From the sequence record OR538032.1: DNA of 64,000 nucleotides; one strand, given 5' to 3'. A program made the position numbers and the translations under genes. The notes under the pieces are model-generated. The model saw only the letters and a list, made by a program, of their open reading frames with translations, was not told the origin of the DNA and ran no database searches. Shown one piece after another: positions 4,709-41,374 of this stretch (the stretch's first letter is position 1; each line of letters opens with the position of its first letter).

Positions 4709-5590
4709 ATGATTATATTCGAAGATATTAATCCGCTGTGTGAAGCATTTGATCGCCCAGCACCATACAAATGGGATTCTATGTACAACGAAGCCCGATT
4801 TACGGTTGGGAACGTGCAGTATGTTGCGTTTATCAAAGATAATGACACAGCAAGAGGTTTAAGTCTGTATGTGGCATTTCAGCGTCGTGATAACGCAACT
4901 GGTCAATGGACTCACTCACTTGCTAAAGGCTCGCCGAAAGACGCAATGACGGTATTGAGCACAATACTGGCAGCAACATTTGACAAGGCATCAAAAGTTG
5001 AACCGAATGAAATTACATTCAGTGCATTTCGTGACGCAGAGGACGAAGACGCAAATAAGCGTTTTAGACTGTACAAGCGTATGGCTGAGCGATACGCAAA
5101 GCAAATGAATTACACAGTTCATATCACTGGTAATAGCTTCACACTAACAAACAACAATCCACCTAAGATCAGACGACTGCACAATGACGGCATTCACAAA
5201 GAAGATGAACTTACATACGTAAATTTCCCTGCTTGTAATGCATTCACATGGGCGAAGATTTTCTGGCTCGACAATGACGGCGATTACATCAAACTTACAT
5301 TGCCTCACGGTCGTATTCACATTGTGAGAAAATCAAGTGACGTGATTGAAATCGAAGCAATTACACCGAAAGGTCGTTTTGACAATCTAGATTCAGATGA
5401 GATTTGGATGTCGATGTTATCTGATATTAAAGTGAAAGCTAGAGGCGGAAGCACATTTACTATATCAGAGAAAGGCGCGATTTTAGATGCCGGTGATATG
5501 ATTTTGTGTGAGCAAGGTACGTTTTATTACCTAAGTTCTGAAGATGATTTCAAAGAAATCTGGGGATATGAAATCGACTCGATTGAATAA
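4709..5590 (+). CDS. putative internal head protein, paralog family member A
   Basis: Late promoter; N-terminus MIIFEDINPLCE; shares SLAKG..KDAMTV and KRFRLYKRMAER with 40523. Confidence 0.75.
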   Translation: MIIFEDINPLCEAFDRPAPYKWDSMYNEARFTVGNVQYVAFIKDNDTARGLSLYVAFQRRDNATGQWTHSLAKGSPKDAMTVLSTILAATFDKASKVEPNEITFSAFRDAEDEDANKRFRLYKRMAERYAKQMNYTVHITGNSFTLTNNNPPKIRRLHNDGIHKEDELTYVNFPACNAFTWAKIFWLDNDGDYIKLTLPHGRIHIVRKSSDVIEIEAITPKGRFDNLDSDEIWMSMLSDIKVKARGGSTFTISEKGAILDAGDMILCEQGTFYYLSSEDDFKEIWGYEIDSIE

Positions 5591-5591
5591 G

Positions 5592-5618
5592 AAAAGGGAG
5601 CAATTTGCTCCCTTTTTT
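5592..5618. terminator. bidirectional terminator
   Basis: AAAAGGGAGC-AATTT-GCTCCCTTTTTT between convergent genes. Confidence 0.9.
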
Positions 5619-5620
5619 GA

Positions 5621-7285
5621 TCATGGTGTCAGAGGACTACGTTCTTTCACTTTGCGGTCTTCGTCGATTTCAATATCAACAACTCGCATGAAGTTAGCAA
5701 CTTGCGCTAACTCACTCAAACGTTCCTGCTTTTTGTAAGCAGACAGGACGCCGCTTTTCGATGAATTGTCTTTGGCTTTCAAGCGAATCACCGCATCGAA
5801 TTCTGATAATTGAACAACGTCGGCTTCGAACATCGTATTACGGTTGATGATGAAATCACAATCGCCTTTCTTCCCGTATTTGCCTGGTGCTAAAACAGGT
5901 AACCCGTCAGACTCAATAACAAACACAACGTTCAGTTTTCTGTCAGATTCGAGCATATCACGCATAATTGATTTGCTATTCTTGCTCGTCGCGTTGACGA
6001 TTGTTTTCGCGCTAGATTCAACAAAGTCACATACAACAAATGGATCAGTTGATGATGTGATGAACGCAGTTGAAACGAACGCGCCAGATTCAAGAATCGA
6101 GCCGACACGTTTGCTAGACATTTCACAACCACGATATAGCGTAACGCCATTCGACACCTTACCAGCTTCATAGAAAGCTCGGTCTAAGCGAGAAATTGCA
6201 TCCCTAACCTTTTCATCACCTGCGCCGTGAACTAACTCTTCATTGACCTTCCACGAATAACGAGACGCAGAATAGCGAGAAATTGCAGCTTGAGTAAGAG
6301 AAGATAGACCAGCATATGAATCTTCTTGCATCATTTGCAACGATAATTGGTCATATTGCTTCTCAAACGCACGTGAACGGGCTTTTAACAGTGCGCCGCA
6401 TACTTCGCTAATCAAGTTAGCTTTAACGCCCTCAGAGCGTGCAGCGTCGATATATGGGTTCATTCGTTCTGCTACATCAACAAGGTCGATGTTCATATCA
6501 ACAATTGCTTGAGCAGCGTTAGCCAATTTCGTTAGACCGTCAGTTGCTGCCGCTTCTGTTAATTGCTGCTTGATAGATGCACTGACCCGCGCTTCCATTT
6601 GTGGCATTTGTAGAATTTGATTTGGGACGCGAACGGCAGGGTTTTCTTCTACCCATTGACCTAGAACATCATCTTCATAATCATCATAGCCAGCATCGGC
6701 AGTCACGATGATTGTTTTCTTGCTTGAAATGTCAGTCTCTTTCGCCATTTTAGCAGCAAGAATATTGATTGTTTCTTCGGTTGCTTCGACGAGTTTATCA
6801 GCGTCATAGCCGGGTTTCGTGATCACGAAGAAGCTGAAATCTTCAGCCATTTCATTATCACCGACGTTCATGATTTTAGTCGTTTCGCAGCCGTATCGAA
6901 GTTTCTTGAACAGCGTTTTAACACGCATGTCGAACATTTTACCGCTACCGATCTTTTGAATACGCATAGACACAGCGTTGGCACGTGTTTTCAACATGAA
7001 ACTTTGGATCAATTTAACCAATGTTTCTTGAAACTTTTCTTGGTCTCCCATGTCACGGATGGTTAATCCGCCTTTTTTGCCTCGCATTGCTGAGACAGTA
7101 CAGAACCACGAACGTTTTCCACGATTTCCGATGTCTGATTTTGTTTTAGTTGTGAACGAAACTACAACGTCACGAGCTTCGCCTTTCATATCGATCACAA
7201 AGAATTTGTTTTCTTTGGTCGAGCGAGCCGGATAGTAGTCGTACGTTGCGCTCATGTTTTCAGTTAATTGTTGAAATCCAATCAT
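5621..7285 (-). CDS. alt: Alt-like ADP-ribosyltransferase-fold protein
   Basis: C-terminal ART motifs TLYRG, FITSS, PG...DCDFIINRN; next to g30 and antisense, as for T4 alt. Confidence 0.75.
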   Translation of the reverse strand: MIGFQQLTENMSATYDYYPARSTKENKFFVIDMKGEARDVVVSFTTKTKSDIGNRGKRSWFCTVSAMRGKKGGLTIRDMGDQEKFQETLVKLIQSFMLKTRANAVSMRIQKIGSGKMFDMRVKTLFKKLRYGCETTKIMNVGDNEMAEDFSFFVITKPGYDADKLVEATEETINILAAKMAKETDISSKKTIIVTADAGYDDYEDDVLGQWVEENPAVRVPNQILQMPQMEARVSASIKQQLTEAAATDGLTKLANAAQAIVDMNIDLVDVAERMNPYIDAARSEGVKANLISEVCGALLKARSRAFEKQYDQLSLQMMQEDSYAGLSSLTQAAISRYSASRYSWKVNEELVHGAGDEKVRDAISRLDRAFYEAGKVSNGVTLYRGCEMSSKRVGSILESGAFVSTAFITSSTDPFVVCDFVESSAKTIVNATSKNSKSIMRDMLESDRKLNVVFVIESDGLPVLAPGKYGKKGDCDFIINRNTMFEADVVQLSEFDAVIRLKAKDNSSKSGVLSAYKKQERLSELAQVANFMRVVDIEIDEDRKVKERSPLTP

Positions 7286-7318
7286 TTTTATAGACTCACC
7301 CTTTAGAAAATATATGAG

Positions 7319-7326
7319 TATTTATG
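7319..7326 (-). promoter_or_regulatory. late promoter variant
   Basis: CATAAATA on - strand upstream of alt-like. Confidence 0.6.
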
Positions 7327-7376
7327 ATGCACATAACACCCGTTGAAAATATTTTAAACTTTTTCGCAAAAAAAGG

Positions 7377-7406
7377 TTGCACAACGATAGTGTTGTCTCC
7401 TATTAT
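7377..7406 (+). promoter_or_regulatory. class I promoter
   Basis: TTGCAC-N18-TATTAT, then ATCGAAACGA. Confidence 0.7.
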
Positions 7407-7446
7407 TATCTCATCGAAACGAATTAACAAACAAGAGAGAATAATT

Positions 7447-7950
7447 ATGAATGCACAATCAATGACTAACGCTCAAATCGCTGAACTATTCGACATGACA
7501 GTTGACGCAAACGGTTTTCAAGCAGTTGATGCGAAAGGTCGTCGTCATTACCTGACCGACTTACGTCAAAAAGCAATGAAAGCTGCTAAGACGAAGAAAG
7601 CACGTAAAGTACGCGCTGAAGCACAACCTAAAGCAACTGCCGAAGAACTACTTGCAGAACTACAAAGCGAGTCGTCAGATTTCTGGGAAATTCGCGAATC
7701 TCAGCCAGGGATGGACTCTGAAGAACACGGTCTGAACGTGTACGTGACTGCTGGTCTGCCTGATCGTCACCGCGTAATGATTCGCTCAAGTGTTTTAACA
7801 AACAAAGAGCTTGATCGTGAACTCGGCTACCTGAATCCATCAAAGCAGAAAGAAGAACAGCGTCGCAAAAAATCGACAATTATTTTCTCAAACCGTTCAG
7901 CGAAAGAAATCGTTGAAATCATTGAAAAAGTGAAGTCAATTAGTGAATAA
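7447..7950 (+). CDS. early hypothetical protein
   Basis: AGAGAG RBS before ATG 7447; the longer ORF call runs through the promoter. Confidence 0.75.
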   Translation: MNAQSMTNAQIAELFDMTVDANGFQAVDAKGRRHYLTDLRQKAMKAAKTKKARKVRAEAQPKATAEELLAELQSESSDFWEIRESQPGMDSEEHGLNVYVTAGLPDRHRVMIRSSVLTNKELDRELGYLNPSKQKEEQRRKKSTIIFSNRSAKEIVEIIEKVKSISE

Positions 7951-7985
7951 TGTGAACTAACTCACGAAAAAGTAGTTTTCGGGTA

Positions 7986-8014
7986 TTGACAATAACACAT
8001 CAATACCCGATAAT
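7986..8014 (+). promoter_or_regulatory. class I promoter inside an inverted repeat
   Basis: TTGACA-N17-GATAAT; IR CGGGTATTGA/TCAATACCCG. Confidence 0.7.
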
Positions 8015-8058
8015 AAACACATCAAGACGAGATACGAACTACTTAAAGAGAGAACATT

Positions 8059-8871
8059 ATGACAATCACTAAAGCAGAAATGAAAGCAATCGCACTTGAC
8101 CTAATGAGCGGTAACAATCTAATGCAACGCGATTTGATTGCTGAAGGTTGGTCTTTCGAATTCTCAACTCGCAAAGCTGCACTTGGTGACTGTAACTACC
8201 GTACTAAAGTACTACGTCTTTCTGAAGTGTACTTGAATGCTCGTACTAAAGAAGAGCAAATCAACACAATCACTCACGAAATGGCTCACGCAATCGCGTA
8301 CACTGATTTCAACGAACGTGGTCACGGTGCTATCTGGAAGCGTGTGCATCGTCAACTAGGTGGTACTGCTGAACGTTGTTCAACTGTTTCAAATCCTGAA
8401 GCCGTAGACAGCAAGTACGTTGTTTTCTTCGAAAACGCTCAAGGTGAACTAGAAGTAGTTCAAAAAATGGATCGCATGACTAAGCGTTTTCAACCAGTAC
8501 ACATCAAGTCTCTATACTTGAAAGGTCGCAAAGCTGAAACTGAAGGTCAACTTCGTTGTGTTTCTTCAGCGACGTTCAAAGCTATCAAAGCTGATTTAGA
8601 AGCTAAGAAAGCTGATAACGCTGAAGCATCAAAACCAGTTGCACCTAAAGCTAAGAAAGCTGAAACACCTAAAGCTAAGAAAGTTTCAGCACGCGGTCAA
8701 GCTGCTCGTGACGCAATCGCAGAAATCGTGATGACTACTACTCATAAAGGTTGTAAGTCAGTGTCTTTCGAACAGCGTGGCAAATACAAAGACTGGTACA
8801 TCATGATTGAACTAGAAGCTCACACAATCGAACAGCGTCTAGACACTTTCAAAAAGAAACACAGCCTGTAA
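8059..8871 (+). CDS. SprT-like zinc metalloprotease domain protein
   Basis: LGDCNY...ITHEMAHA...GHGAIWK; K/A/P-rich linker with a 17-bp direct repeat. Confidence 0.8.
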   Translation: MTITKAEMKAIALDLMSGNNLMQRDLIAEGWSFEFSTRKAALGDCNYRTKVLRLSEVYLNARTKEEQINTITHEMAHAIAYTDFNERGHGAIWKRVHRQLGGTAERCSTVSNPEAVDSKYVVFFENAQGELEVVQKMDRMTKRFQPVHIKSLYLKGRKAETEGQLRCVSSATFKAIKADLEAKKADNAEASKPVAPKAKKAETPKAKKVSARGQAARDAIAEIVMTTTHKGCKSVSFEQRGKYKDWYIMIELEAHTIEQRLDTFKKKHSL

Positions 8872-8881
8872 TCTCTCATTT

Positions 8882-8902
8882 AGCCCCGAAAGGGGCTTTT
8901 TT
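8882..8902 (+). terminator. intrinsic terminator
   Basis: AGCCCC-GAAA-GGGGCT-TTTT. Confidence 0.9.
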
Positions 8903-8907
8903 AGGTT

Positions 8908-8975
8908 TGAGCCGGAAAAATTCCGTCTCATCTTAGTAGAATTAGTGCTTTTAGTAATATTAGAAGTATTAGTAA
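8908..8975 (+). repeat. hairpin plus 5x TTAG at 9-bp period (copy 1)
   Basis: TGAGcCGGAA-AAA-TTCCGtCTCA; TTAG at 8933, 8942, 8951, 8960, 8969. Confidence 0.9.
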
Positions 8976-8980
8976 GATTT

Positions 8981-9010
8981 GTTTAACAAACACCTTGACA
9001 GCCGTATAAT
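8981..9010 (+). promoter_or_regulatory. class II promoter
   Basis: G-TTTAAC-N17-TATAAT. Confidence 0.65.
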
Positions 9011-9028
9011 ACACGTCGAGGTGATGAA

Positions 9029-9268
9029 ATGATAACGATATACACAATTCCTAACTGTGACGGTTGTCGTCACGCTATCGCCCTCTGTAAGTTCAAACAC
9101 GTCCCGTATACTGTAATCGAGTTACAGTCACAGACTGACATCGACCAATTACATCAAAAGCTTGGTGGCAATCGCAATATTCGCGTTCCTCTGGCTATGC
9201 ATGGTGACACATACATCGGTCACCTGCCTGAATTGAAGAAATGGGTTGATGAACAGACGTATAAATAA
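9029..9268 (+). CDS. glutaredoxin
   Basis: IYTIPNCDGC active site; VP motif; YIG. Confidence 0.9.
   Translation: MITIYTIPNCDGCRHAIALCKFKHVPYTVIELQSQTDIDQLHQKLGGNRNIRVPLAMHGDTYIGHLPELKKWVDEQTYK
9260..9267 (+). promoter_or_regulatory. T4-type late promoter
   Basis: Exact TATAAATA. Confidence 0.85.
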
Positions 9269-9326
9269 AAGAAATTACGTACATTCTCTCCGCTGAAATG
9301 CGGCAATAAATTAAAGGAATCAAACA

Positions 9327-10223
9327 ATGACTGTATCTAATAGTAACGGTTTACCAGACATTGTTACTGTTCAAAAACGACTATATCCGCTGATCTTCAC
9401 GGAAATCGTTTCTGAACAGCCAACAAAGCAACCCGTTGCAACTGCTTACGGCTTTAAAGCTGTACCTGAAGCTGATGACGGCAGCGGCTGGACACAATTT
9501 GGGTTTAGACTTGATCGTTGGTATGCTCAAGTTGAATCTTCAAAAATGAAGACTGAAATCTCTCTTGAAACGCTGCAAGATATGCAAGCACTTGGTGTTA
9601 GTAATTCAGTGATCGTAGACTCACTAGCTGACCAAATTGCTGATGAAATCAATACGTCGATTATCGGTGCGTTGAATAGCATTTCAACTGTTGGTGCTGC
9701 ACTAACTCTGACGGGTAATACTGATTTTGAAAAAGGTCAAGATCTTTATACGAAAGTACACCTAGCAGCGTCTGAAATTGAAAAAACAACTGGTTGTAAA
9801 GGCACATATGTCGTTGCGGGCGGTAAATGTTTCGGTTATTTGACTGGTTGTGGTGTTGTACAGCGAGTTGGCGAATCGGACGTTTACAAAGCATGGTCTG
9901 GTTTATACATCGTACACGACAAATACGCAACAAGCGATTACGTGACTGTAGGTGTTAAGAAAGACATGGGTGATTATGAAATCTCAAGTCTAGTATTCAG
10001 CCCGTATCAATTCGACCAAGCGAATGACGGTGCGATTGCTTATCAATACAAGGGCACTGACCCGAAATCATTCCACCCTGTGTATGGTGTTATTGCTCGT
10101 TACGCACTAACTGTTCCGCCACTAGAAGACAATCAGACTGGTGCAGTTGAGATTGATTGGTCGAACTTAGGTGCGCTTGCTAATAGCTCAAAGCTTTCAT
10201 ACACATACGCAGTAACAGTATAA
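9327..10223 (+). CDS. 24: gp23/gp24-family capsid protein, probably head vertex gp24
   Basis: Segments resembling gp23/24 (IVSEQPTKQP; ISLETLQDMQAL; LADQIADEIN); late promoter. Confidence 0.7.
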   Translation: MTVSNSNGLPDIVTVQKRLYPLIFTEIVSEQPTKQPVATAYGFKAVPEADDGSGWTQFGFRLDRWYAQVESSKMKTEISLETLQDMQALGVSNSVIVDSLADQIADEINTSIIGALNSISTVGAALTLTGNTDFEKGQDLYTKVHLAASEIEKTTGCKGTYVVAGGKCFGYLTGCGVVQRVGESDVYKAWSGLYIVHDKYATSDYVTVGVKKDMGDYEISSLVFSPYQFDQANDGAIAYQYKGTDPKSFHPVYGVIARYALTVPPLEDNQTGAVEIDWSNLGALANSSKLSYTYAVTV

Positions 10224-10231
10224 GGTGTGAC

Positions 10232-10744: not shown

Positions 10745-10753
10745 GGAATTAAC

Positions 10754-12199: not shown

Positions 12200-12207
12200 G
12201 GTGAATC

Positions 12208-30205: not shown

Positions 30206-30208
30206 TTT

Positions 30209-30790: not shown

Positions 30791-31181
30791 TTTTGATATT
30801 GCACTACTTAACCCGACTATCATCAAGTCAACTGAAATCGCAGGTCATAACTTCGGTAACAAAGTTATCGAGATTGTGAGTGATCACATTGACGGCGATG
30901 ACATGGATAACTTCATTGAATTCATCGTTGAAGCTGAAGCACGAGAGCGTGAGCACCCATATGTGGGTCATTTCTACGGTGATTTGTTAGTCATGAGCTT
31001 GTCTGAAGACCGTCATCACTTCGAAGCACGTATGTCTGACGAAGACATTGCGAATCTGACAATCGCGATTGATGATGCATTCATTCAATACACAAATGAG
31101 TTTATTGAATGGTACAAGCAGAAAGCGCGAGAGTTCTTCGATGACGATGAATTGGAATTCATCATTGAAAACGAAATCTAA
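30783..31181 (+). CDS. acidic hypothetical protein
   Basis: SD GAGG. Confidence 0.75.
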   Translation: MTDFDIALLNPTIIKSTEIAGHNFGNKVIEIVSDHIDGDDMDNFIEFIVEAEAREREHPYVGHFYGDLLVMSLSEDRHHFEARMSDEDIANLTIAIDDAFIQYTNEFIEWYKQKAREFFDDDELEFIIENEI

Positions 31182-31182
31182 C

Positions 31183-31210
31183 AAAATCCCGTCTTAATGG
31201 CGGGATTTTT
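31183..31210 (+). terminator. intrinsic terminator
   Basis: AAAATCCCGTC-TTAAT-GGCGGGATTTTT. Confidence 0.85.
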
Positions 31211-31218
31211 AGTTTTCA

Positions 31219-31226
31219 TCTAAATA
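31219..31226 (+). promoter_or_regulatory. late promoter variant
   Basis: TCTAAATA directly after the terminator. Confidence 0.6.
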
Positions 31227-31253
31227 GAAGAAACAACACAAAAAGGTATCATA

Positions 31254-32708
31254 ATGAAACTGTTTACTGAATTTTATCAAGAAGTTCGTCTTGACGAAAT
31301 CTCAGATCGTGCGAATATCGACATTGATTGGGATTGGGGTCATGAGAACGGGACGGGAGAAACCTCGGCGAGATTTGATGCAGCCGGTGAGAAATTTCAA
31401 GTTAGCGTTGACGAGAGTAACCCGGGTTATTTCACGATCACATTCCAGAACTCTAGTGGCTATTCTCAGACTGGTAGAGCGGGACACTCTGCGGCTGCTG
31501 TATTCTCTGGCGTATTGACGACTTTACGTGAATTCACCGAAACGTACGAAGAAGAAATGGGCATGAAACCATATGAATATGACTTCAGCGCAGCGTACGA
31601 ACTACCGCGAAATCACGACTATTACTCATTGGTTAACAATCGTCGCGAGGCAACTCGTTTAGATGAAGAAAGCAAGAAAAAGCTATTGAAAGACTTGATT
31701 TCTCGCCCTATGCTTTACTACGCACTATCGTTGACTTTTGGTAAAGAATACGGCTATTCAACTGAAATTAGCGACCGCTGGCTTGCTCGTCTTGCAGGGG
31801 GCGCGAATGATTTCCGTTCCGTTCGTAAGAACGTGACTCGAAGCATTCTGTCGATGAATGACAACGACGTTAACCAAGCGTTGATGAACATGAGCGGTTC
31901 TGTTTCGTTCACTCTTACCAACGAAAACGAACGTCCTAGCAGCTACGACACAGCATTCGGTGGCGGTCCGTCTCTTGAAGACTACGTTGATGAAGCAGAC
32001 CAGTACCAAATCGAAGCGTGGATCAATGATGGTCGTGAAGATGAAATCATCGAACATGCTGATTGGCAAACTCTAGTTCGCATTGCGGAATGGGGTCTGA
32101 TGCACGATGAACTGATTTTCCATGATGATGAAGACGTTCGAAACGCGGTAATCCGCACAGACTACGAAATGGGCGAGAAACTAGCCGAATCGCCTGAGTG
32201 GGAACATCGTAAACAAGCTGCTGAAAATGGTTTTGGCATTTGGGATCTTGTTCTTGACTCTGACGAAGACGTGCGCGAAGCTGCATGGGACTGGTCGTTT
32301 GAAAATGACGATGCTGATACTCGAATCACATACGCGAAACGCTACGAAGGCAACTTCGGTCGCGCAATGGCTGAAGACGTGTGGGATCGCATGATCGACG
32401 ATTCAGATGACTATGAAGAGCGTCAATACGTAGCTGAACAAGGTTATCGTCTTGAAGAACTTCTAGCAGACCATGACGAAGACGTGCGTTCTTCTGCAAT
32501 CAATGCTGTATTCACGGTAATGGGTCTGGATGGTCGAGAAGCGGCTGAGTTCTTGATGGAAAACTCTGAACCTTACCAAGAAGAAGTGTTTGAATACGCG
32601 ATTAACGGTAACTTCGGTCCATCTTTCGATGAAGCACTAATCGAAATTGCTGAAGAAAACGGCGTTGATGTTTCTGAGTACAAAGAAGACGAAGACGAAG
32701 ACGAATAA
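31254..32708 (+). CDS. putative internal head protein, family member B, with acidic HEAT-like repeats
   Basis: MKLFTEFYQEVRLDE; repeats L..D.DEDVR..A. Confidence 0.75.
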   Translation: MKLFTEFYQEVRLDEISDRANIDIDWDWGHENGTGETSARFDAAGEKFQVSVDESNPGYFTITFQNSSGYSQTGRAGHSAAAVFSGVLTTLREFTETYEEEMGMKPYEYDFSAAYELPRNHDYYSLVNNRREATRLDEESKKKLLKDLISRPMLYYALSLTFGKEYGYSTEISDRWLARLAGGANDFRSVRKNVTRSILSMNDNDVNQALMNMSGSVSFTLTNENERPSSYDTAFGGGPSLEDYVDEADQYQIEAWINDGREDEIIEHADWQTLVRIAEWGLMHDELIFHDDEDVRNAVIRTDYEMGEKLAESPEWEHRKQAAENGFGIWDLVLDSDEDVREAAWDWSFENDDADTRITYAKRYEGNFGRAMAEDVWDRMIDDSDDYEERQYVAEQGYRLEELLADHDEDVRSSAINAVFTVMGLDGREAAEFLMENSEPYQEEVFEYAINGNFGPSFDEALIEIAEENGVDVSEYKEDEDEDE

Positions 32709-33674: not shown

Positions 33675-33675
33675 T

Positions 33676-33705: not shown

Positions 33706-33731
33706 TTAAGCATAACAAGAGAGGTGAACAA

Positions 33732-34324: not shown

Positions 34325-34334
34325 ATAAAAAGGG

Positions 34335-34363
34335 TTGCACTGTGCAGCCCTTTTCTATATCAT
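34335..34363 (+). promoter_or_regulatory. class I promoter fused to a terminator
   Basis: TTGCAC-N17-TATCAT within AAAAAGGGTTGCAC..GTGCAGCCCTTTT. Confidence 0.75.
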
Positions 34364-34392
34364 GAGCACATCAAAACGAAAGAGAGACGATT

Positions 34393-35013: not shown

Positions 35014-35039
35014 AAAAAGGGGCGAATGCCCCTTTTTTT
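35012..35039. terminator. bidirectional terminator
   Basis: A7-GGGGC-GAAT-GCCCC-T7 between convergent genes. Confidence 0.9.
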
Positions 35040-36093
35040 ATGGTCTGTAGATCATGTGATTTGAACCCATTCGTTCCCATGTACCTAGATTCATGCGATT
35101 TTTCATTTCAACGAAGAATGCGGGGTTTGCTCTAATGTCATCAAGTGGCAGTGCAACAACACCTTCAGTTTTATGCGCCAATAGCTCTAGTTTATCAAGC
35201 AAATCAGACGTTGTACGACCGTCATATTTGAATTGACTGAACCAATAACCAATCTTACTGAATTTCGTATCTCTTGTGTATTTCACATCAAAGCCTTTCA
35301 GAGCATACGCTAAGTTACTTTCTTTACCGTGAAACGGCTTGCGATATGCGCTATGTTCAGCACCAGCACGAGCAAGCAATCTCTTCTTAGCTGCGTCTGG
35401 TAGATTGAACCACCCATCAAAGTTTTTCTTGAAGTTCAACATCCATGCTTCTGGCGTAGCTGGTGAGCCTTTGAAGTATGCTTTCGTATCAGCAATGGCT
35501 TGTGCATAGCGTGCGTTAATCTCATGAGAATAGTTCTGATATTCGTCGTGAGACGCTTCGTGACCGCTTTTAGCGTGACGGATGAACTCTTTATCAATGT
35601 ATCCGCGTTTACGCCCTGAGTGTTGATACACGCCCTCTGCGTCGCTTGTCTCGAAGTCTTCAATGTCACCAGAACGATAGTTGTCGTAAGCGTGTTGCAG
35701 TTCATGTAATGCAGTGCTATACAACTGTGGTTTCTGCAATCTGAATTTCGCCATGATTTGACTAACTGCTGTTACTCCAGTTATATCCACGACAAGCTTG
35801 AGATACCCTGCTTCTGTGATCGAGTCGTCATGTAATTTGCCATTCCAAACACCGAGTTCGGTTGGGTTATTATTGTCTAACTTCAGATATGCTAGAATAC
35901 CTTCAGCTAGTAATGCATCGAACTCACTCTCACCAGTTCTGATATTCAGAGTTTTTGTGTTGACGGATAGTTTATTTGGATCCCATGGTGCTTTACTTAG
36001 AGCGCCTTCTAACTGGCGTTCCAATGTATCGACGATGGTTTTTGACGCTTGTTCTAATGCGCGTTGTGATTGTACGTTTTCAAAAATAATCAT
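35038..36093 (-). CDS. zincin-like metallopeptidase, putative internal head protein
   Basis: LHELQHAYD...SHEINAR; N-terminus MIIFENVQ; CCTAAATA at 36126-36133 (-). Confidence 0.7.
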   Translation of the reverse strand: MIIFENVQSQRALEQASKTIVDTLERQLEGALSKAPWDPNKLSVNTKTLNIRTGESEFDALLAEGILAYLKLDNNNPTELGVWNGKLHDDSITEAGYLKLVVDITGVTAVSQIMAKFRLQKPQLYSTALHELQHAYDNYRSGDIEDFETSDAEGVYQHSGRKRGYIDKEFIRHAKSGHEASHDEYQNYSHEINARYAQAIADTKAYFKGSPATPEAWMLNFKKNFDGWFNLPDAAKKRLLARAGAEHSAYRKPFHGKESNLAYALKGFDVKYTRDTKFSKIGYWFSQFKYDGRTTSDLLDKLELLAHKTEGVVALPLDDIRANPAFFVEMKNRMNLGTWERMGSNHMIYRP

Positions 36094-36111
36094 CTTTTTT
36101 CTCGAATTCGG

Positions 36112-36140
36112 TTGACTGTATTACTTATTTAGGTTAATAT
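36112..36140 (+). promoter_or_regulatory. class I promoter overlapping a divergent late-type box
   Basis: TTGACT-N17-TAATAT, ATCGAAACGA at 36148. Confidence 0.7.
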
Positions 36141-36170
36141 CTCTCTCATCGAAACGAAAGAGAGAACATT

Positions 36171-36866
36171 ATGACTAATGCAGCACGCAAATATGTATAC
36201 GACATCTTCCATGATGAGCTTCAAAAGCCGGTTGTGAATCTAGACGTATTTAAAATCAAGGGTTCAGATGGTAAGCCAGTGATTAACTATCTATCGAACC
36301 CGCACCTACGCAAACAACGCTTTATTATGTTCGTGAATAAACGACATAACATCAAGTATGGACGTTCTTTTTGGTCGCATGATATTCGTGATGATTGTGA
36401 CAAAATCGAAGGTACTTGGTCGAGCGTGGCTAAGGAAATCATCAAACGCAAAGCCGAATACGCAAATTACGTGACTAAGACGTATCTTGATTACGACTAT
36501 GGTGTTGAAGAGCCGACCCTTGCAATCATCGACAAGATGCTGAACAAGCCGAAGCGTTTTCACGTTGCAAAGTACATCAATAATGAACTGTGTGTCAGTT
36601 CGACGAACAATTCAACTGTGCTAATTGATCGTGATACTGGTGTGAAATTCGTTGCGAAGATGCAAGATTATCGCCATACTAGTGATATAATGCGACTTGC
36701 AACACCTGAAAAAGTGTTTACACCTAACGAAGAAAAAGCACTTTGCAGTGCAATTACACATCTTGTAAATTCTCGCATCAACGATATTCGTGCTAAGAAA
36801 CGTGCGAAAGAAGAGAAACGCCGCCAAGCAAAACGTCAACAACTAATCGAAGCATACGGGGCATAA
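36171..36866 (+). CDS. early hypothetical protein
   Basis: AGAGAG RBS. Confidence 0.75.
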   Translation: MTNAARKYVYDIFHDELQKPVVNLDVFKIKGSDGKPVINYLSNPHLRKQRFIMFVNKRHNIKYGRSFWSHDIRDDCDKIEGTWSSVAKEIIKRKAEYANYVTKTYLDYDYGVEEPTLAIIDKMLNKPKRFHVAKYINNELCVSSTNNSTVLIDRDTGVKFVAKMQDYRHTSDIMRLATPEKVFTPNEEKALCSAITHLVNSRINDIRAKKRAKEEKRRQAKRQQLIEAYGA

Positions 36867-36868
36867 TC

Positions 36869-37261
36869 ATGGCATACGAAGTAATCAACGGCAAATTGCG
36901 TAAAGTAAAGAAAAACAAGCCACGCGACTATGATAAAGAATGGTCAAAGATGCACGAATCTGCCAAGAAGCAAGTCGAAATCATGGATCGTATTCATGAA
37001 CGTGAGCGCATTGACCGTCTAGGTACTCGTGAGCGTCACGAAGCAATGATTGACCTTGCTAAACGCAATGAGCGTAAAGGTAAGAAAGGCGGTGACTGTA
37101 ACGTAACTCAGTGTCAAAAGCCAGGCGCAAGCTCTTACAACACTGCAATGAGAGCGTATTACTGCGAGTCTTGTGCTCACGATATTTGGCAAGCAGGTCA
37201 ACGCGACGGTCGTGACTTCATTCGACCAACACCAGATTACACATACAAGTACGAGGGTTAA
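36869..37261 (+). CDS. hypothetical protein with CxxxxC/CxxC zinc finger
   Basis: CNVTQC...CESC. Confidence 0.7.
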   Translation: MAYEVINGKLRKVKKNKPRDYDKEWSKMHESAKKQVEIMDRIHERERIDRLGTRERHEAMIDLAKRNERKGKKGGDCNVTQCQKPGASSYNTAMRAYYCESCAHDIWQAGQRDGRDFIRPTPDYTYKYEG

Positions 37262-37265
37262 TCTC

Positions 37266-37505
37266 ATGGGCGATTTTCTATTGGCAATGTTTATCTTCTC
37301 GTTCGTAATGGCAAACATCGGTTCGATTTTCATTTGCTTGTATGCGGCATTCAATCGCCAATACAACGTACCGATGATCTTAGTTGCACTGTACGGGTTC
37401 ATGGGTACATTTGTTGTCGGCATCGTGTTCTTTCTGCTGTTCATCTTTGCCAAAATCGAAGAAACGAAATTCTGGCAAAAACTGTCTAAAATGAGGGAAT
37501 TCTAA
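37266..37505 (+). CDS. two-TM membrane protein
   Basis: Hydrophobic; SD GAGG before ATG 37266. Confidence 0.7.
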   Translation: MGDFLLAMFIFSFVMANIGSIFICLYAAFNRQYNVPMILVALYGFMGTFVVGIVFFLLFIFAKIEETKFWQKLSKMREF

Positions 37506-37837
37506 TGCAACAAACTGTATTATTCATCGACTTCCGCAACCCACACACTGCGATTGTCGCCAACACGACATTACGAGACAAAAACTTCGATTTGTCGGGT
37601 ATGGGATTGCGTCGAGCTTGTCAGTCGAACTATATTGCACTTGAGAAGCAAGGCAAATGGCGTTTAGTGAAATGTCGTTACATGTTTGGGTTCGAATCTA
37701 TGGAATTCAACACGCTCGATGGTGTTGTTGCATTCATCAACGCGATTAACATCGACAACAATCAACCATTGATTCGTGAAGTTGTTGTTGAAGAAGTCGC
37801 ACCCGTGTACACTAACATTAAAGTACGAGGTTTATAA
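37505..37837 (+). CDS. hypothetical protein
   Basis: TAATG coupling. Confidence 0.7.
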   Translation: MQQTVLFIDFRNPHTAIVANTTLRDKNFDLSGMGLRRACQSNYIALEKQGKWRLVKCRYMFGFESMEFNTLDGVVAFINAINIDNNQPLIREVVVEEVAPVYTNIKVRGL

Positions 37838-38118
37838 TGGGATTTGAAACAAAAATTATCTGCTATGCAGCGCACGTAACTGAATTTGAGCCAGGATGGG
37901 GAACTCGACCAGATGGTTACATCATTGCCAAGACTGAAGCTGATGTTCTGGCAAAAGGCGAGCACATGCGAGAGATCGCTAAACAATCCAAACACGGCTA
38001 TGAGTATATCGGTGAAGTCTTTAAGTTCGAACCGACTCAGAAAGCTATTGATGAATTAACCGACCGTGACTATATCTGGACTGGTCGAAACTTTGATGAA
38101 TGGGGTACTGTACTATGA
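37837..38118 (+). CDS. hypothetical protein
   Basis: TAATG coupling. Confidence 0.7.
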   Translation: MGFETKIICYAAHVTEFEPGWGTRPDGYIIAKTEADVLAKGEHMREIAKQSKHGYEYIGEVFKFEPTQKAIDELTDRDYIWTGRNFDEWGTVL

Positions 38119-38348
38119 CAATCTTTCTGCTTGTATCATTCTTTCTAGGCGCTTATTTCATGAGCGAACTGCCACCAGAATTGCGATACAAAACAACATC
38201 GCCTAAGAAACTATGGGCTTCTGCATCACGACTGCAACAAATTGCACTTGTTGTCGGGTTTGTCGGCGTGCTGTTCTTCTACTTGATTCTAGCTATCCTA
38301 ATTGGATGGACTAAAGTTAAAGAATCTGACTGGAATCGCAAGGCATGA
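38115..38348 (+). CDS. two-TM membrane protein
   Basis: Hydrophobic; ATGA overlap. Confidence 0.7.
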   Translation: MTIFLLVSFFLGAYFMSELPPELRYKTTSPKKLWASASRLQQIALVVGFVGVLFFYLILAILIGWTKVKESDWNRKA

Positions 38349-38515
38349 TAGTTCTTCAGCACGAGACTGACGGGTATATCGTCCAAATTGGATGTGACAT
38401 TTGTTGCACCCCTGACATTGACAAAGCATCCATGTTCGAAACTGTTGGTGTCGCACAAGAATTCAAAGATCAATGGGACTTATGGGACTGGGAAGTTAGA
38501 GAGGTCGGCTTATGA
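38345..38515 (+). CDS. 56-aa hypothetical protein (not in ORF track)
   Basis: MIVLQHETDGY...; ATGA overlaps at both ends. Confidence 0.65.
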   Translation: MIVLQHETDGYIVQIGCDICCTPDIDKASMFETVGVAQEFKDQWDLWDWEVREVGL

Positions 38516-38700
38516 TGCGTAGGCATGAAATTCAAGAACTAGTTGAGCGTCGCGGGTTTGAATTTCGCGAAGCAATCAATGAATACAGCGAATCACGTTG
38601 GCAAGTCATCGACAATGGTACAGTGGTCTACGAATCATACAATGAATACTGCATTGAAGCATTCTTGCTTGGCGTAGATTACATCACAGACGCAATTTAA
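38512..38700 (+). CDS. hypothetical protein
   Basis: Coupled ORF. Confidence 0.7.
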   Translation: MMRRHEIQELVERRGFEFREAINEYSESRWQVIDNGTVVYESYNEYCIEAFLLGVDYITDAI

Positions 38701-38720
38701 GCCGCATTTCGCGGCTTTTT
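38700..38720 (+). terminator. intrinsic terminator
   Basis: AGCCGC-ATTTC-GCGGCT-TTTT. Confidence 0.8.
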
Positions 38721-38729
38721 GAGGTTCAT

Positions 38730-39032
38730 ATGAAGAAACAAATATTAAACATTCAGCGCGACGATGCGAAATTCGAGCTATATCGTCAAGGTCAAGCTGC
38801 ACGTCATGCACGTGCTGAAATCATCCGACACGTTGCGAAGAATCATAACCCATTTCTAGTTGGTCAATACACGCTTTACAAAGAGCACGACGTGAAAATC
38901 GTTCGTCAGTTGCTGCGTTATGCTGAGATAGATGCTGATGTGCGAGTTGTCCCTACGATTGGTCGTTTACCAGACTGTTTGAACGAAATTCACGGAATCG
39001 GGTTCGAGGTAACGCTAAATAATGATAGTTAA
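38730..39032 (+). CDS. hypothetical protein
   Basis: SD GAGG. Confidence 0.7.
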   Translation: MKKQILNIQRDDAKFELYRQGQAARHARAEIIRHVAKNHNPFLVGQYTLYKEHDVKIVRQLLRYAEIDADVRVVPTIGRLPDCLNEIHGIGFEVTLNNDS

Positions 39033-39306
39033 CATTGCTCATCATTCTTTTGATGTGTACATTGGTCGCGGCACACCGTTCGGAAATCCATTCAAAGCAG
39101 GGATCGACGGCACTCGGAGCGAAGTTATTGAGCTTTATCGAGAGTGGTTGCGCATTCAATTACAAGACGACGAATTTAAAAAGCAGTTTATGCAACTAAA
39201 AGGAAAGATTCTCGGCTGTCATTGTAAGCCAAAAGCGTGCCATGGCGATGTAATTCTCGAAGAACTTGATAGATTGAGCAGCCCACTAAACAATTTTATA
39301 GGTTAA
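39022..39306 (+). CDS. DUF4326-like protein
   Basis: DVYIGRGTPFGNPF, LKGKILGCHCKPKACHGDVI. Confidence 0.8.
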   Translation: MIVNIAHHSFDVYIGRGTPFGNPFKAGIDGTRSEVIELYREWLRIQLQDDEFKKQFMQLKGKILGCHCKPKACHGDVILEELDRLSSPLNNFIG

Positions 39307-39309
39307 TCT

Positions 39310-39603
39310 ATGAGAGAAGCAATTGCATTATTAAGCAACACGAGAATGGGATATACTGACATTAGCGCATTTGGCGATCCAGTATTATATGTTCATGCGG
39401 GACATGAGACGGTATTAAAAGTGCAATACACTGAAGATTGCTACTCATTTTACGACTACAGAAGCAAGTATCTTTATACAGAGCAGTCCATCGACGACTT
39501 AGAGATACATTTGAAATCAATAGATGTCGGGTTAGACGATGATCTACCGTTAAATGGGAACATCGACAAAGACACGATACCAGACGGGGAATTTTTAGAA
39601 TGA
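39310..39603 (+). CDS. hypothetical protein
   Basis: ORF. Confidence 0.65.
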   Translation: MREAIALLSNTRMGYTDISAFGDPVLYVHAGHETVLKVQYTEDCYSFYDYRSKYLYTEQSIDDLEIHLKSIDVGLDDDLPLNGNIDKDTIPDGEFLE

Positions 39604-40520
39604 AGTTTAGTGAATATCAAAGAATAAACGAATCTCTGGATCGCCCTGCCAATTATAAACTGGTTAGAGAACTCCCAAACTTAAACGTGTATGCGTTTCA
39701 AGTTGATGGTGTTTATTATGAAATAGACATTCAGAAATCAAACATACGAGAGCCTAATGGGATGCAGTCAATGAAAGCTGAAGTCTCATTCAAAGCACTC
39801 GACGGTAGTGGTTATCAACTAACCAAAAAAGACGATAAAACGGCACGAATTGTACTATCAACCGTAGTTGATGCTATCTTCAGCTTCGTACGCGAATACA
39901 ATCCTGCTCAAATATTATATTCTGCATTCAACGATGCTGATCCGTCAGATGCGGCTAAACGACTTCGTTTATATCAGATCATGACTAAAGCAAAACTGCG
40001 TGAATTCCCCGAATATGATTTCCGAAACGTTGGGCGTGATTTCATCGTATACGATGTCAATTACCAAAAACGAGTCGAGGAATTTTCAAGAAGAGCACGT
40101 AGACCAGTGGGATATGAAGAAAGATCAGACCACGTTGAAGTGAATTTATCACATGCCAACGCCTTTGCGTTTATACGAGCGTTTGGGGTAAATGAAGGCG
40201 ACTCGAAGAGCGGCGTACTAGGTAAAGGTCGAGCTTTCGTAGGAGCAACAAACGAAATTAAAGCACGTCTGAGAGTAGATCGTGTGGTGTATGAAATGTC
40301 TGACAGAGAAGGGTGGCTTGCGGCTCTTCAGCACCCTATTTTTGACTATGGCGAGGGTCCTGAAGTTGATCGAACATATCTAGTCGGGGCATTTAAAAAC
40401 TTCTATATCGTGTTGACTAGTCAAACAAGTCTAAAAATATACACCGATGATGCTGCGTTTACAAAATATGTGAATGCTTTCGACGCGCCATGGTTAAACC
40501 CAGAAATAATGGAATCTTAA
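39600..40520 (+). CDS. putative internal head protein, family member C
   Basis: MKFSEYQRINESLDRPA; YSAFND.D..DA.KRLRLY. Confidence 0.75.
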   Translation: MKFSEYQRINESLDRPANYKLVRELPNLNVYAFQVDGVYYEIDIQKSNIREPNGMQSMKAEVSFKALDGSGYQLTKKDDKTARIVLSTVVDAIFSFVREYNPAQILYSAFNDADPSDAAKRLRLYQIMTKAKLREFPEYDFRNVGRDFIVYDVNYQKRVEEFSRRARRPVGYEERSDHVEVNLSHANAFAFIRAFGVNEGDSKSGVLGKGRAFVGATNEIKARLRVDRVVYEMSDREGWLAALQHPIFDYGEGPEVDRTYLVGAFKNFYIVLTSQTSLKIYTDDAAFTKYVNAFDAPWLNPEIMES

Positions 40521-40522
40521 AA

Positions 40523-41374
40523 ATGAAATTTAGCGAATATCAAAACGAGCTAACGGAAGCATTTGATCGACCTGCACAGATCACAGCACGTCGTGGCAAT
40601 CAGAGTTTTTTCATGATTGGTGACACTGAGTACATGGTCGGGTTGTATTACGACGACTCGAAAAAATCACTCGGAGTTGACTTCATGCATAAGCCAGGTG
40701 ATTCAGCAACGTACCACTACAGCTTAGCCAAAGGCAACTCAAAAGACGCCATGACTGTTTTTGCAACCGTGATTGCAGAAATCAAGCGACTTATGAACGA
40801 CAAACCGGTCAATCGAATCAGCTTCAGTGCGTTTCAAGACTCTGACAGTTCAGATGCTAAAAAGCGTTTTCGATTGTACAAGCGCATGGCAGAACGCTTC
40901 AGCAAAGAACTCGGGTTCAGAATGACCACTTATGGTGATTCTTTCGTATTGACACGTGTAAACCCTGTTGCAGTCAACGTAGAAGAACCAACTGGTTATG
41001 ATACAGCGTGGGGTACTGAAATGCTCGATCTGCGTGAAGTCAACGACGCTGCAATTGCCAAAGTCACAGAAGGTGATGGTGAATGGCGTTTGAATAACTG
41101 GAACAAGCTGATTGTTCGCAACGGAAAAGTAACGCTAACATCGGGTCCAATTCGAATGTCAGACGCTTGGTACGATGCGTTTTACGACTTAGAATGGTAT
41201 CACGATGAAGAAGGCGAACAATGGTTCGATGATGAACAGAAGATCGCGATCATCAATGGTAAAGTTTGGGTCGTCAATGACATGGAAATTACTATTTGGC
41301 CAAGTATTGAGAAATTAGAATTGCAAAGTGACTCGGAATTATCAAGCGGGACACGTCAATTGCTTGGATATTAA
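40523..41374 (+). CDS. putative internal head protein, family member D
   Basis: MKFSEYQNELTEAFDRPA; FSAFQD.D..DAKKRFRLYKRMAER. Confidence 0.75.
   Translation: MKFSEYQNELTEAFDRPAQITARRGNQSFFMIGDTEYMVGLYYDDSKKSLGVDFMHKPGDSATYHYSLAKGNSKDAMTVFATVIAEIKRLMNDKPVNRISFSAFQDSDSSDAKKRFRLYKRMAERFSKELGFRMTTYGDSFVLTRVNPVAVNVEEPTGYDTAWGTEMLDLREVNDAAIAKVTEGDGEWRLNNWNKLIVRNGKVTLTSGPIRMSDAWYDAFYDLEWYHDEEGEQWFDDEQKIAIINGKVWVVNDMEITIWPSIEKLELQSDSELSSGTRQLLGY

Follow-up and report, generated by a model that had tools for sequence, protein, structure and literature searches.

The window, a stretch of 64,000 nucleotides from sequence record OR538032.1, corresponds at 100% identity to positions 26980-90979 of NC_005083.2, the genome of Vibrio phage KVP40. 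An earlier sequence-only reading drew attention to four open reading frames within it, which were taken to be a polymorphic family of paralogs having a common N-terminal domain and exchanged C-terminal domains. These are the genes KVP40.0058, KVP40.0097, KVP40.0115 and KVP40.0116, and they are found in the following context:

4678..4685 (+): T4-type late promoter motif TATAAATA, 23 nt upstream of the KVP40.0058 start
4709..5590 (+): KVP40.0058, 'type A', 293 aa
4709-4744 (+): predicted leader of KVP40.0058, residues 1-12, ending L-C-E
up to approximately residue 150 (5158) (+): DUF6934/GNAT-like domain of KVP40.0058
5159-5587 (+): beta-rich C-domain of KVP40.0058
5621..7285 (-): KVP40.0059, Alt-like ADP-ribosyltransferase, 554 aa, annotated as hypothetical in the record
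31219..31226 (+): near-consensus late-promoter-like motif TCTAAATA, 27 nt upstream of KVP40.0097, following a terminator hairpin
31254..32708 (+): KVP40.0097, a diverged member of the family, 484 aa; leader ending L-D-E at residue 15, DUF6934-like domain (approximately residues 34-170, insertion included), then an acidic C-region with HEAT-like repeats
36112..36140 (+): candidate sigma-70-like (early-type) promoter, upstream of the co-directional block 0104-0116
39600..40520 (+): KVP40.0115, 'type B', 306 aa; leader ending I-N-E at residue 11, DUF6934 domain, then a C-domain homologous to that of KVP40.0058
40523..41374 (+): KVP40.0116, 'type C', 283 aa from 40523; leader ending L-T-E at residue 12, DUF6934 domain, then a beta-rich C-domain
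41377..41402 (+): intrinsic-terminator-like hairpin, directly 3' of KVP40.0116

The start of KVP40.0116 at 40523, as originally read, is preferable to that at 40490 annotated in the record, because the PHROG alignments leave out the first 11 residues of the protein as annotated; the start annotated for its orthologs is equivalent to 40523. Just 2 nt separate the stop of KVP40.0115 from this position. The two genes are adjacent paralogs, but a recent tandem duplication was rejected as their origin, since their identity is just 29%; furthermore, 1.081.O has a different arrangement and 6E35.1a lacks it. A fifth member of the family, KVP40.0371, lies outside the window.

All of the motifs by which the family was first recognised are present in the four proteins. 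The N-domains of the three members of approximately 290 aa align far above chance, BLASTP comparison of KVP40.0058 with KVP40.0116 giving 41% identity over 147 aa (E 1e-32), that of KVP40.0058 with KVP40.0115 an E value of 2e-16 and that of KVP40.0115 with KVP40.0116 one of 3e-15. As this similarity spans a folded domain of about 150 aa, the possibility that the common motifs represent nothing but a leader peptide was rejected. Neither pairwise comparison with the other members nor an HMM of three sequences gave a significant match to KVP40.0097. An HMM constructed from 319 instances of the domain matches all five KVP40 members, including residues 34-217 of KVP40.0097 (E 9e-8 among 439 ORFs of the window), where it aligns with an insertion of approximately 30 aa. 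Because this deep HMM pairs exactly the motifs previously named in KVP40.0097, the 'diverged version' of the N-domain suspected there is real, and the alternative that this is an unrelated protein is contradicted. On the basis of these alignments, the four genes and KVP40.0371 are real paralogs.

A search using a profile of the KVP40 N-domains yielded 1502 protein-cluster representatives, and 47 of the 54 sampled match the Pfam family DUF6934 (PF22028), at up to 162 bits (best E 8e-48). DUF6934 is also the best Pfam match of KVP40.0058 (17.1 bits), KVP40.0115 (21.8 bits) and KVP40.0116 (18.5 bits), although these scores are below the gathering score of 27 bits, while the Pfam search found no match between KVP40.0097 and PF22028. 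By transitive homology, the KVP40 N-domain is to be placed within DUF6934. The family had rightly been said to have no described function: Pfam gives none for this domain, and the sole paper found merely lists its name. The domain occurs in one to five copies per protein in approximately 1500 protein clusters, and the contigs examined are those of large marine phages. Its metagenomic and jumbo-phage fusions include Zeta-toxin kinase, poly(A) polymerase/HD, GGACT, amidoligase, ParB and deaminase; the proteins concerned reach 1600 aa and have CTS-like N-termini. The proposal that it acts as an N-terminal carrier does not agree with its position, which is C-terminal in KVP40.0371 and both internal and tandem in hundreds of metagenomic proteins. 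A word-indexed protein search detected close orthologs only, a scan of IMG/VR returned KVP40 and VH7D alone, and tblastn with a metagenomic stand-alone domain found matches in Vibrio phages only.

The best PDB fold matches of the domain are GNAT-fold proteins, but they are weak (Foldseek E 0.012-0.1, target TM 0.3-0.5) and none is significant; a PDB sequence search with the domain profile likewise found no match below E 0.19. The order of strands and helices corresponds to beta2-beta7 of the GNAT fold, and the top matches are mostly GNAT proteins or GNAT-like non-enzymes (among them the ICL2 regulatory domain, Naa50, antizyme, AtaT/TacT and AcrVA5). By contrast with this fold, the KVP40 domain lacks helices alpha1 and alpha2, and its members have no recognisable CoA pyrophosphate-binding loop (R/Q-x-x-G-x-G/A before alpha3).

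The C-halves, which had been considered to share no evident similarity, are indeed dissimilar by BLASTP, but profile-profile comparison and AlphaFold models reveal a relationship between those of KVP40.0058, KVP40.0115 and KVP40.0116. The first two are matched by hhalign with a probability of 92.6% (E 4.6e-7, 77 columns), while the profile-profile match between KVP40.0115 and KVP40.0116 is marginal (E 4.4e-4, 100 columns). The models of KVP40.0058 (mean pLDDT 90.1) and KVP40.0116 (pLDDT 86.8) have an identical order of secondary-structure elements; the C-domain models were compared by this order and by Foldseek matches, rather than by superposition. The three C-halves are divergent homologs of one fold. 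The architecture differs only in KVP40.0097, the C-region of which scores 24.9 bits with Pfam HEAT (cut-off 23.5), and in KVP40.0371, with its C-terminal domain. Comparison of orthologs reveals that the N- and C-parts diverge alike (with identities of, for example, 53/57, 52/38 and 40/45%) and that there is no breakpoint at the junction. Even the very divergent allele of type A found in phages of the ValKK3 group differs along the whole gene, and not from the junction onwards (P0160). Searches of Pfam and PADLOC, the latter producing no matches at all that would bear out the counter-defence role originally suggested, failed to find a toxin domain in the C-halves, or any enzyme or toxin domain in the KVP40 members, and no ART domain was matched in KVP40.0058, KVP40.0097, KVP40.0115 or KVP40.0116 using PHROG and Pfam. 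The analogy with polymorphic toxins therefore fails, because three of the four C-halves are homologous, the N- and C-halves co-vary without a breakpoint, and purifying selection acts on the genes, which are core and single-copy. What likeness there is lies in the broad concept of a common N-part and C-parts that differ, and no immunity-like partner was identified in these domain searches.

More of the original description survives at the N-termini, where leaders resembling the T4 capsid-targeting sequence (CTS) had been noted: stretches of 9-15 residues end in L/I-x-E, the Glu being residue 12 of KVP40.0058, 11 of KVP40.0115, 12 of KVP40.0116, 15 of KVP40.0097 and 9 of the Alt-like KVP40.0059, in which the motif reads L-T-E. 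This is the published motif of gp21, and T4 propeptides are 7-19 residues long (PMC9026906). It is present at the T4 cut sites in KVP40 gp23, gp22, gp21 and gp68. In those metagenomic relatives in which the first DUF6934 domain begins more than 25 residues into the protein, [LIV]-x-E occurs near the N-terminus in 64%, against 20% of background ORFs, and a stricter leader pattern in 20%, against 0.9%; scanning the KVP40 genome with a loose N-terminal pattern was non-specific. The motif Glu is also nearly invariant at internal repeats (173/175), jointly with one Arg and one Tyr of the domain, so that its role may be structural or catalytic instead of marking a point of cleavage.

The closest parallel for such leaders in T4 is with IPI, IPII and IPIII, which likewise begin with a short propeptide that terminates in L/I-x-E; each of the two families is diverse, yet the leader is common to its members, and the presence of the KVP40 family in virions is seen in a relative. 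We infer CTS-type targeting and cleavage of the KVP40 members. No sequence similarity links these to the IPs, from which they also differ in their greater size (33-56 kDa, against 8-20 kDa) and in being acidic (pI 4.2-6.1) where the IPs are small and basic. What the KVP40 members have in common includes a folded domain besides the leader, and they are core, conserved proteins, whereas the IPs are highly variable. Unrelated proteins with CTS-like leaders are known from other T4-like phages (PMC9026906, PMC3012670).

KVP40.0059, which is convergent with KVP40.0058, is identified as Alt-like by its match to PHROG 802 (E 7e-89), despite which its BLASTP comparison with RB69 Alt is not significant. 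Its N-region (residues 5-133) is collinear with the DUF6934 profile (hhalign E 1.8e-4, probability 48%), and a search of BFVD with the KVP40.0058 model matched Alt proteins from several T4-like phages (Foldseek E 1e-3 to 7e-3), while the domain HMMs did not significantly match RB69 Alt with HMMER. The loose likeness of the family to the Alt-like N-region suggested previously is thus upheld, if weakly. KVP40.0058 follows the ligase gene, the same place as is occupied by alt.1 and alt in RB69. The family therefore resembles T4 Alt in having a leader with L-x-E and, in the case of KVP40.0058, in lying in the alt neighbourhood 3' of ligase, but differs in that the four KVP40 genes have no ART domain and resemble the N-region of Alt weakly.

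The late promoter motif TATAAATA of KVP40.0058 is directly preceded by the terminator hairpin that follows the ligase gene. The whole KVP40 genome contains 13 exact copies, each of them upstream of an ORF, and the genes concerned include gp24, gp25, wac, gp18, gp22 and gp23 besides KVP40.0058. The variant with one mismatch found at KVP40.0097, TCTAAATA, is also ahead of gp48 and KVP40.0372. No late motif was found for KVP40.0115 and KVP40.0116, which lie behind the early-type promoter candidate; this candidate is a consensus match only, in a region where the count of such sites is not above chance.

The particle proteome of the related Schizotequatrovirus 6E35.1a, consisting of spectral counts only from two replicates (PMC12028318, Tables S4 and S8), allows the presence of the family in virions to be assessed. 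Following a check of orthology, it was found to contain counterparts of KVP40.0058 (VP6E351A_0094, 16/61 spectra), KVP40.0116 (VP6E351A_0154, 37/51 spectra), KVP40.0097 (VP6E351A_0134, 58/109 spectra) and KVP40.0371 (9/14 spectra), while type B is not covered by this proteome. For comparison, the Alt-like protein has 122/233 spectra, the tail tube 47/58 and the head protease 17/28, and evident contaminants have 13 or fewer (PMC12028318). The particles were PEG-precipitated and also contained some non-structural proteins, such as spanins and GTP cyclohydrolase (PMC12028318). The proposal that these proteins are packaged is supported by the detection of orthologs of four members in virions, which makes it reasonable to think of them as delivered by the particle. 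All 18 Schizotequatroviruses in the same study carry the family genes (PMC12028318). Type A and KVP40.0097, the latter as a single copy, are present in 48 of 48 phage records, while the C-domain of KVP40.0115 is found in 25 of approximately 49 related phage records and is absent from about half.

Because counterparts are found in the particles of a related phage, the DUF6934 proteins encoded by the four genes are probably packaged proteins of KVP40 that have hitherto gone unrecognised, and not toxin-like cassettes in which the ends are swapped. The fuller interpretation, which we consider rather more probable than its competitors taken together, is that the KVP40 DUF6934 paralogs constitute a Schizotequatrovirus family of virion-packaged proteins that follow a T4-like leader route and have arisen by divergence, not swapping. 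Each protein would be made with an N-terminal propeptide of 9-15 residues ending in L/I-x-E, which would work like the T4 capsid-targeting sequence in bringing it into the prohead core, after which a gp21-type prohead protease (KVP40.0361) would cut the propeptide off. The mature proteins would stay in the head with the DNA, beside the Alt-like ADP-ribosyltransferase, and would probably be ejected into the cell when infection takes place. The three members of approximately 290 aa would descend from one two-domain gene that was duplicated and diverged, with no exchange of C-modules, KVP40.0097 and KVP40.0371 joining the DUF6934 domain to other partners. The homology, the identity of the domain, the conservation of the leader motif, the late-promoter motif and the occurrence of the orthologs in virions are observed; the targeting by the leader, its cleavage, the location inside the head, ejection and the role of the domains in the host are what we infer.

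Among the alternatives, the one that survives best, though it seems unlikely, is that these are permanent structural or assembly parts, such as accessory proteins of the head core, neck or decoration, which are neither ejected nor play any role in the host cell. The family is core, single-copy and strongly conserved, and its abundance in virions is like that of minor structural proteins, with no enzyme or toxin domain having been found. The very low dN/dS of types C and A (0.0003-0.02 in a published table, PMC12028318) fits structural parts better than arms-race effectors. On the other hand, the L/I-x-E leader, the adjacency to the Alt-like gene and the structural likeness to its product resemble delivered effectors, as do the relatives in which this domain is fused to enzymes. 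To our knowledge, the T4 head structure needs no such internal proteins.

It is less likely still that the family consists of cytoplasmic acyl or acetyl transferases, or binding proteins, of GNAT type, the detection of which in particles represents carry-over. In addition to the GNAT-like fold, this would account for the weak Pfam GNAT matches of 5 of the 54 sampled relatives, for the Gly-rich loop ahead of helix 3 that is conserved in the wider family (according to the consensus of the 319-instance HMM), for the position of KVP40.0115 and KVP40.0116 in an early-type gene block, and for the spanins and GTP cyclohydrolase in the PEG-purified particles. However, four members were detected along with Alt, with counts 2-8 times those of the evident contaminants, and KVP40.0058 has a canonical late promoter. 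Furthermore, the conserved loop Gly of the family is replaced by Lys, Asp or Ser in the KVP40 members, the PDB matches fall short of significance (best E 0.012), and tandem arrays of up to five copies would be odd for an enzyme. Least probable of all, and largely refuted for KVP40.0058, KVP40.0115 and KVP40.0116, is the original suggestion of a constant N-terminal carrier with unrelated, rapidly exchanged C-terminal effectors in the style of polymorphic toxins: the HEAT-like region of KVP40.0097, the joining of a similar N-region to ART in the Alt-like protein, the many enzymes attached to the domain in metagenomic relatives, the occurrence of type B in just about half of relatives and the divergent type A allele of the ValKK3 group are in its favour, but the single C-domain fold of the three members of approximately 290 aa, the similar rates at which ortholog halves diverge, the extension of the type A difference over the entire gene, the failure to identify toxin domains or immunity-like partners and the C-terminal domain of KVP40.0371 all argue against it.

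Returning to the interpretation as diverged, packaged proteins, a comparison can be made with polyvalent proteins, the large, virion-embedded multidomain effectors of phages (PMC9503650 and its reference 29). These are resembled by the metagenomic and jumbo-phage relatives with one to five DUF6934 domains fused to enzymes, whereas the KVP40 proteins are small, have two domains and contain no recognisable enzymes; no discussion of DUF6934 as a module of polyvalent proteins was found in the papers searched. A more speculative extension, which we consider unlikely, is that DUF6934 is the signature of an undescribed but widespread group of proteins located inside the heads of marine T4-like and jumbo phages, that the nearly invariant [LIV]-x-E at the start of each repeat is a prohead-protease site, that proteins with two to five repeats are polyproteins, and that the Alt N-region is a diverged copy of the domain. 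If this polyprotein reading were true, proteins with two to five repeats would be cut in the prohead into GNAT-like units of approximately 16 kDa and freed enzyme domains, and the Alt N-region would be a diverged copy of a packaging-associated domain.

These results correct the interpretation of the KVP40 genes as polymorphic-toxin-like cassettes, which was tempting but wrong. In its place, four kinds of evidence, namely the DUF domain, the T4-style leader, the Alt locus and existing virion proteomics, are linked into a testable assignment for five KVP40 genes and approximately 1500 metagenomic protein clusters. KVP40 and its relatives are vibriophages of broad host range and of interest in aquaculture, for which internal or ejected head proteins have not so far been annotated. 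Should the domain mark packaged proteins, it would provide a sequence handle for delivered effectors, even those with multiple enzymes, in uncultured marine phages.

The window is 100% identical to positions 26980-90979 of the record of Vibrio phage KVP40 (Schizotequatrovirus, Straboviridae), in which the four genes considered here and the Alt-like gene beside the first of them are all annotated as hypothetical.

Family genes and the Alt-like neighbour (window coordinates)
4709-5590: KVP40.0058 (0058)
5621-7285, minus strand: KVP40.0059 (0059), Alt-like ADP-ribosyltransferase (PHROG 802, E 7e-89), convergent beside 0058
31254-32708: KVP40.0097 (0097)
39600-40520: KVP40.0115 (0115)
annotated from 40490, likelier start 40523: KVP40.0116 (0116)

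Over their N-terminal ~150 residues, 0058, 0115 and 0116 are clearly homologous (BLASTP E values of 1e-32, 2e-16 and 3e-15; 29-41% identity), and the motifs quoted in a sequence-only reading of this DNA were all found in the ORFs. No match to the N-domain of 0097 was obtained by pairwise comparison or with a three-sequence HMM; an HMM of 319 domain instances detected it (E 9e-8 among 439 window ORFs), pairing exactly the stretches of 0097 which that reading had named, with a ~30-residue insertion that separates the fifth strand from the last helix. The family of these four genes is real, and the same HMM added a fifth member from the KVP40 genome beyond the window, KVP40.0371 (0371; E 1e-23), in which the domain is C-terminal (residues ~165-315). 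The start at 40523 previously proposed for 0116 is the better one: the annotated start (40490-40522) entails a 31-nt overlap with 0115 and 11 extra residues, which are missing from ortholog annotations and from the PHROG alignments, which begin at residue 12, and in PVA8, 1.081.O and 6E35.1a the annotation starts each ortholog at the corresponding Met, immediately behind the gene before it.

Searched exhaustively with HMMER, the KVP40 N-domain profile retrieved 1502 cluster representatives at E ≤ 1e-3 (178 at E ≤ 1e-10), and 47 of 54 sampled representatives matched Pfam DUF6934, a few of the 54 also giving weak GNAT-family matches. The KVP40 proteins score under the Pfam cut-off, hence their DUF6934 membership is transitive. 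AlphaFold models of 0058 (pLDDT 90.1) and 0116 (pLDDT 86.8) fold the N-domain as a four-strand sheet, helix, strand, helix and two-strand hairpin, a fold whose top PDB hits, GNAT or GNAT-like proteins, all fall short of significance (best E 0.012). The domain common to all members is DUF6934, whose fold is GNAT-like; in the KVP40 proteins the glycine that the family conserves in the loop before helix 3 is missing, making cofactor binding doubtful for them. Proteins with DUF6934 contain one to five copies, placed anywhere along the chain, and reach ~1600 aa; the domain also stands alone (~150 aa). Both genomic contexts inspected were large contigs of marine phages carrying T4-type genes. One 1408-aa protein, encoded at 10001-14227 of L006, a 210 kb TARA contig of T4-like jumbo-phage type, contains four DUF6934 repeats; genes for DnaJ and a ClpB-like chaperone lie nearby. 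In cultured phages, BLAST finds relatives only in Vibrio phages, nearly all of them Schizotequatrovirus-like.

In all family members, as in 0059, the first 9-15 residues end in L/I-x-E. The T4 prohead protease gp21 recognises L/I-x-E and cuts after the Glu, and the capsid-targeting propeptides of T4 comprise 10-19 residues in internal proteins and 7 in Alt (PMC9026906). KVP40 encodes gp21, and has L/I-x-E at the T4 cut positions of gp23, gp22, gp21 and gp68. Throughout the wider family, [LIV]-x-E-[ASL]-[FL]-D-x-P starts N-terminal and internal repeats alike, with the Glu present in 86/86 N-terminal and 173/175 internal aligned instances; 0371 has just two L/I-x-E sites, at residue 6 and at the exact domain start (residue 167). 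Where the first domain lies far from the N-terminus, 64% of relatives have N-termini like the T4 capsid-targeting sequence, against 20% of background ORFs (20% against 0.9% with a stricter pattern). The leader motif fits a targeting and cleavage signal, but the invariance of the Glu, alongside that of one Arg and one Tyr of the domain, could equally reflect a structural or catalytic role of this Glu. As T4 gp24 is cut by gp21 (sites in the Fig. 3 legend of PMC9026906), an N-terminal site is expected in KVP40 gp24; this head vertex protein (9327-10223) has no L/I-x-E anywhere, and is flagged in the record as possibly carrying an internal deletion.

The exact motif TATAAATA occurs 13 times in the KVP40 genome against ~22 expected by composition (both strands), and 13/13 copies lie on the coding strand no more than 60 nt upstream of an ORF (window copies at 4678, 9260 and 62143), six of them preceding gp18, gp22, gp23, gp24, gp25 and wac. 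One lies between a terminator hairpin and 0058, 23 nt ahead of the gene, and a one-mismatch variant, TCTAAATA, is similarly arranged at 0097 and also found ahead of gp48, KVP40.0353 and KVP40.0372. Before 0058 (4651-4708) and 0097 (31180-31253), a GC-rich terminator hairpin is followed at once by the late-promoter-like motif. Each of the two may be a self-contained cassette resembling the promoter/stem-loop modules reportedly described in T4-like hyperplastic regions. Neither motif precedes 0115 or 0116, which close a block opened by a sigma-70-like promoter candidate and closed by a terminator.

Particles of the related phage 6E35.1a have been analysed by mass spectrometry in two replicates (Tables S4 and S8 of a 2025 Schizotequatrovirus study, PMC12028318); orthology with KVP40 was confirmed by coordinates and tblastn.

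Spectral counts in PEG-purified 6E35.1a particles, two replicates (PMC12028318)
VP6E351A_0094: 0058 ortholog, PHROG 6387, directly after the ligase gene; 16 / 61
VP6E351A_0154: 0116 ortholog, PHROG 6387; 37 / 51
VP6E351A_0134: 0097 ortholog, PHROG 13195; 58 / 109
VP6E351A_0018: 0371 ortholog, PHROG 16075; 9 / 14
VP6E351A_0095: 0059 ortholog, Alt-like; 122 / 233
VP6E351A_0019: KVP40.0372 ortholog, PHROG 16422; 21 / 34
VP6E351A_0003: comparison protein, tail tube gp19; 47 / 58
VP6E351A_0007: comparison protein, head protease gp21; 17 / 28

As purification was by PEG only and the tables give spectral counts, they establish the presence of the 6E35.1a orthologs in particles, and the predicted processing and location go beyond them. 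A purely structural role would also place the proteins in the particle, and is an unlikely alternative to packaging in the manner of internal proteins, whose targeting signal the leader resembles. That the proteins are cytoplasmic enzymes found in particles by carry-over, which PEG purification might permit, is more improbable still; evident contaminants (spanins, GTP cyclohydrolase, ligase) gave at most 13 spectra (PMC12028318). KVP40.0372, a 197-aa protein encoded just upstream of 0371 outside the window (KVP40 genome piece L012:11775-12368, minus strand), has a 7-residue leader ending in L-T-E with TCTAAATA ahead of the gene, and is another candidate packaged protein, one without a DUF6934 domain.

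The ortholog of 0059 is among the more abundant non-capsid proteins of 6E35.1a particles; 0059 itself matched nothing in Pfam at E ≤ 0.01. The RB69 gene order is 30.2, 30.1, ligase, alt.1, alt, and that of KVP40 is 30.2, 0056, ligase, 0058 and, on the opposite strand, the Alt-like gene, hence 0058 belongs to the alt neighbourhood. Searching BFVD with the model of type A (types A, B and C being the ~290-aa members 0058, 0115 and 0116 with their orthologs) matched Alt proteins of several T4-like phages (E 1e-3 to 7e-3) and large proteins of Atu_ph07, Ackermannviridae and Vibrio phages. The KVP40/VH7D Alt-like N-region and the domain profile form a collinear alignment of 116 columns running from leader to last helix (E 1.8e-4, probability 48%); HMMER gave no significant match between the domain and RB69 Alt. 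The 'loosely similar layout' ascribed to the Alt-like N-region is thus a fair description of these alignments, which are suggestive rather than proof.

The C-terminal halves of 0058, 0115 and 0116 had been read as swapped domains with no evident similarity. BLASTP between them indeed finds nothing, yet they sort into three orthologous groups related by profile-profile comparison (A with B, probability 92.6%, E 4.6e-7; B with C marginally, E 4.4e-4 over 100 columns), and the models of 0058 and 0116 share an element order after the N-domain of two strands, helix, three or four strands, helix, four strands and helix. The top BFVD match of the type A model (E 2e-18) is a full-length alignment to a 279-aa protein, most likely, from its length and UniProt accession series, the type C protein of phage 1.081.O; the E value for a protein consisting of the N-domain alone was 7e-12. 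Ortholog comparison gave similar rates of divergence for the N- and C-halves and showed no discontinuity where they join. Type A and 0097 are single-copy in 48/48 related records; type B occurs in just 25, and in a different position in 1.081.O. These profile links, models, BFVD matches, co-diverging halves and ortholog distribution indicate that 0058, 0115 and 0116 are old, diverged duplicates of one two-domain gene, not module swaps. A different architecture is limited to 0097, whose C-region has HEAT-like repeats (Pfam, 24.9 bits), and 0371. By the refutation test which the swapped-domain reading had itself set, the swap is refuted for the three ~290-aa members.

Relative to KVP40, the type A C-half is ~41% identical in ValKK3, phi-ST2 and phi-Grn1 and 72% in the close relatives VH7D, Va3 and PVA23, while 0097 is ~90% identical across all six; the divergent type A resembles the product of allelic replacement of the entire gene at the ligase-adjacent locus. 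PVA8 (L014:1451-2284) and PC-Liy1 have an extra 834-bp gene just upstream of the 0114 homolog, beside the 0115/0116 pair (window ~39300), and in XZ1 the type B gene is matched by its last 19 codons only.

The polymorphic-toxin model, with a shared carrier and variable counter-defence effectors, is very improbable, the three ~290-aa members being diverged duplicates. No defence or counter-defence model matched. The genes whose 6E35.1a orthologs are listed above are core to 18/18 phages, with dN/dS of 0.0003 to 0.21 (table of PMC12028318). Their best-supported function, which we consider reasonably probable, is as particle-packaged proteins handled like the internal proteins and Alt of T4.
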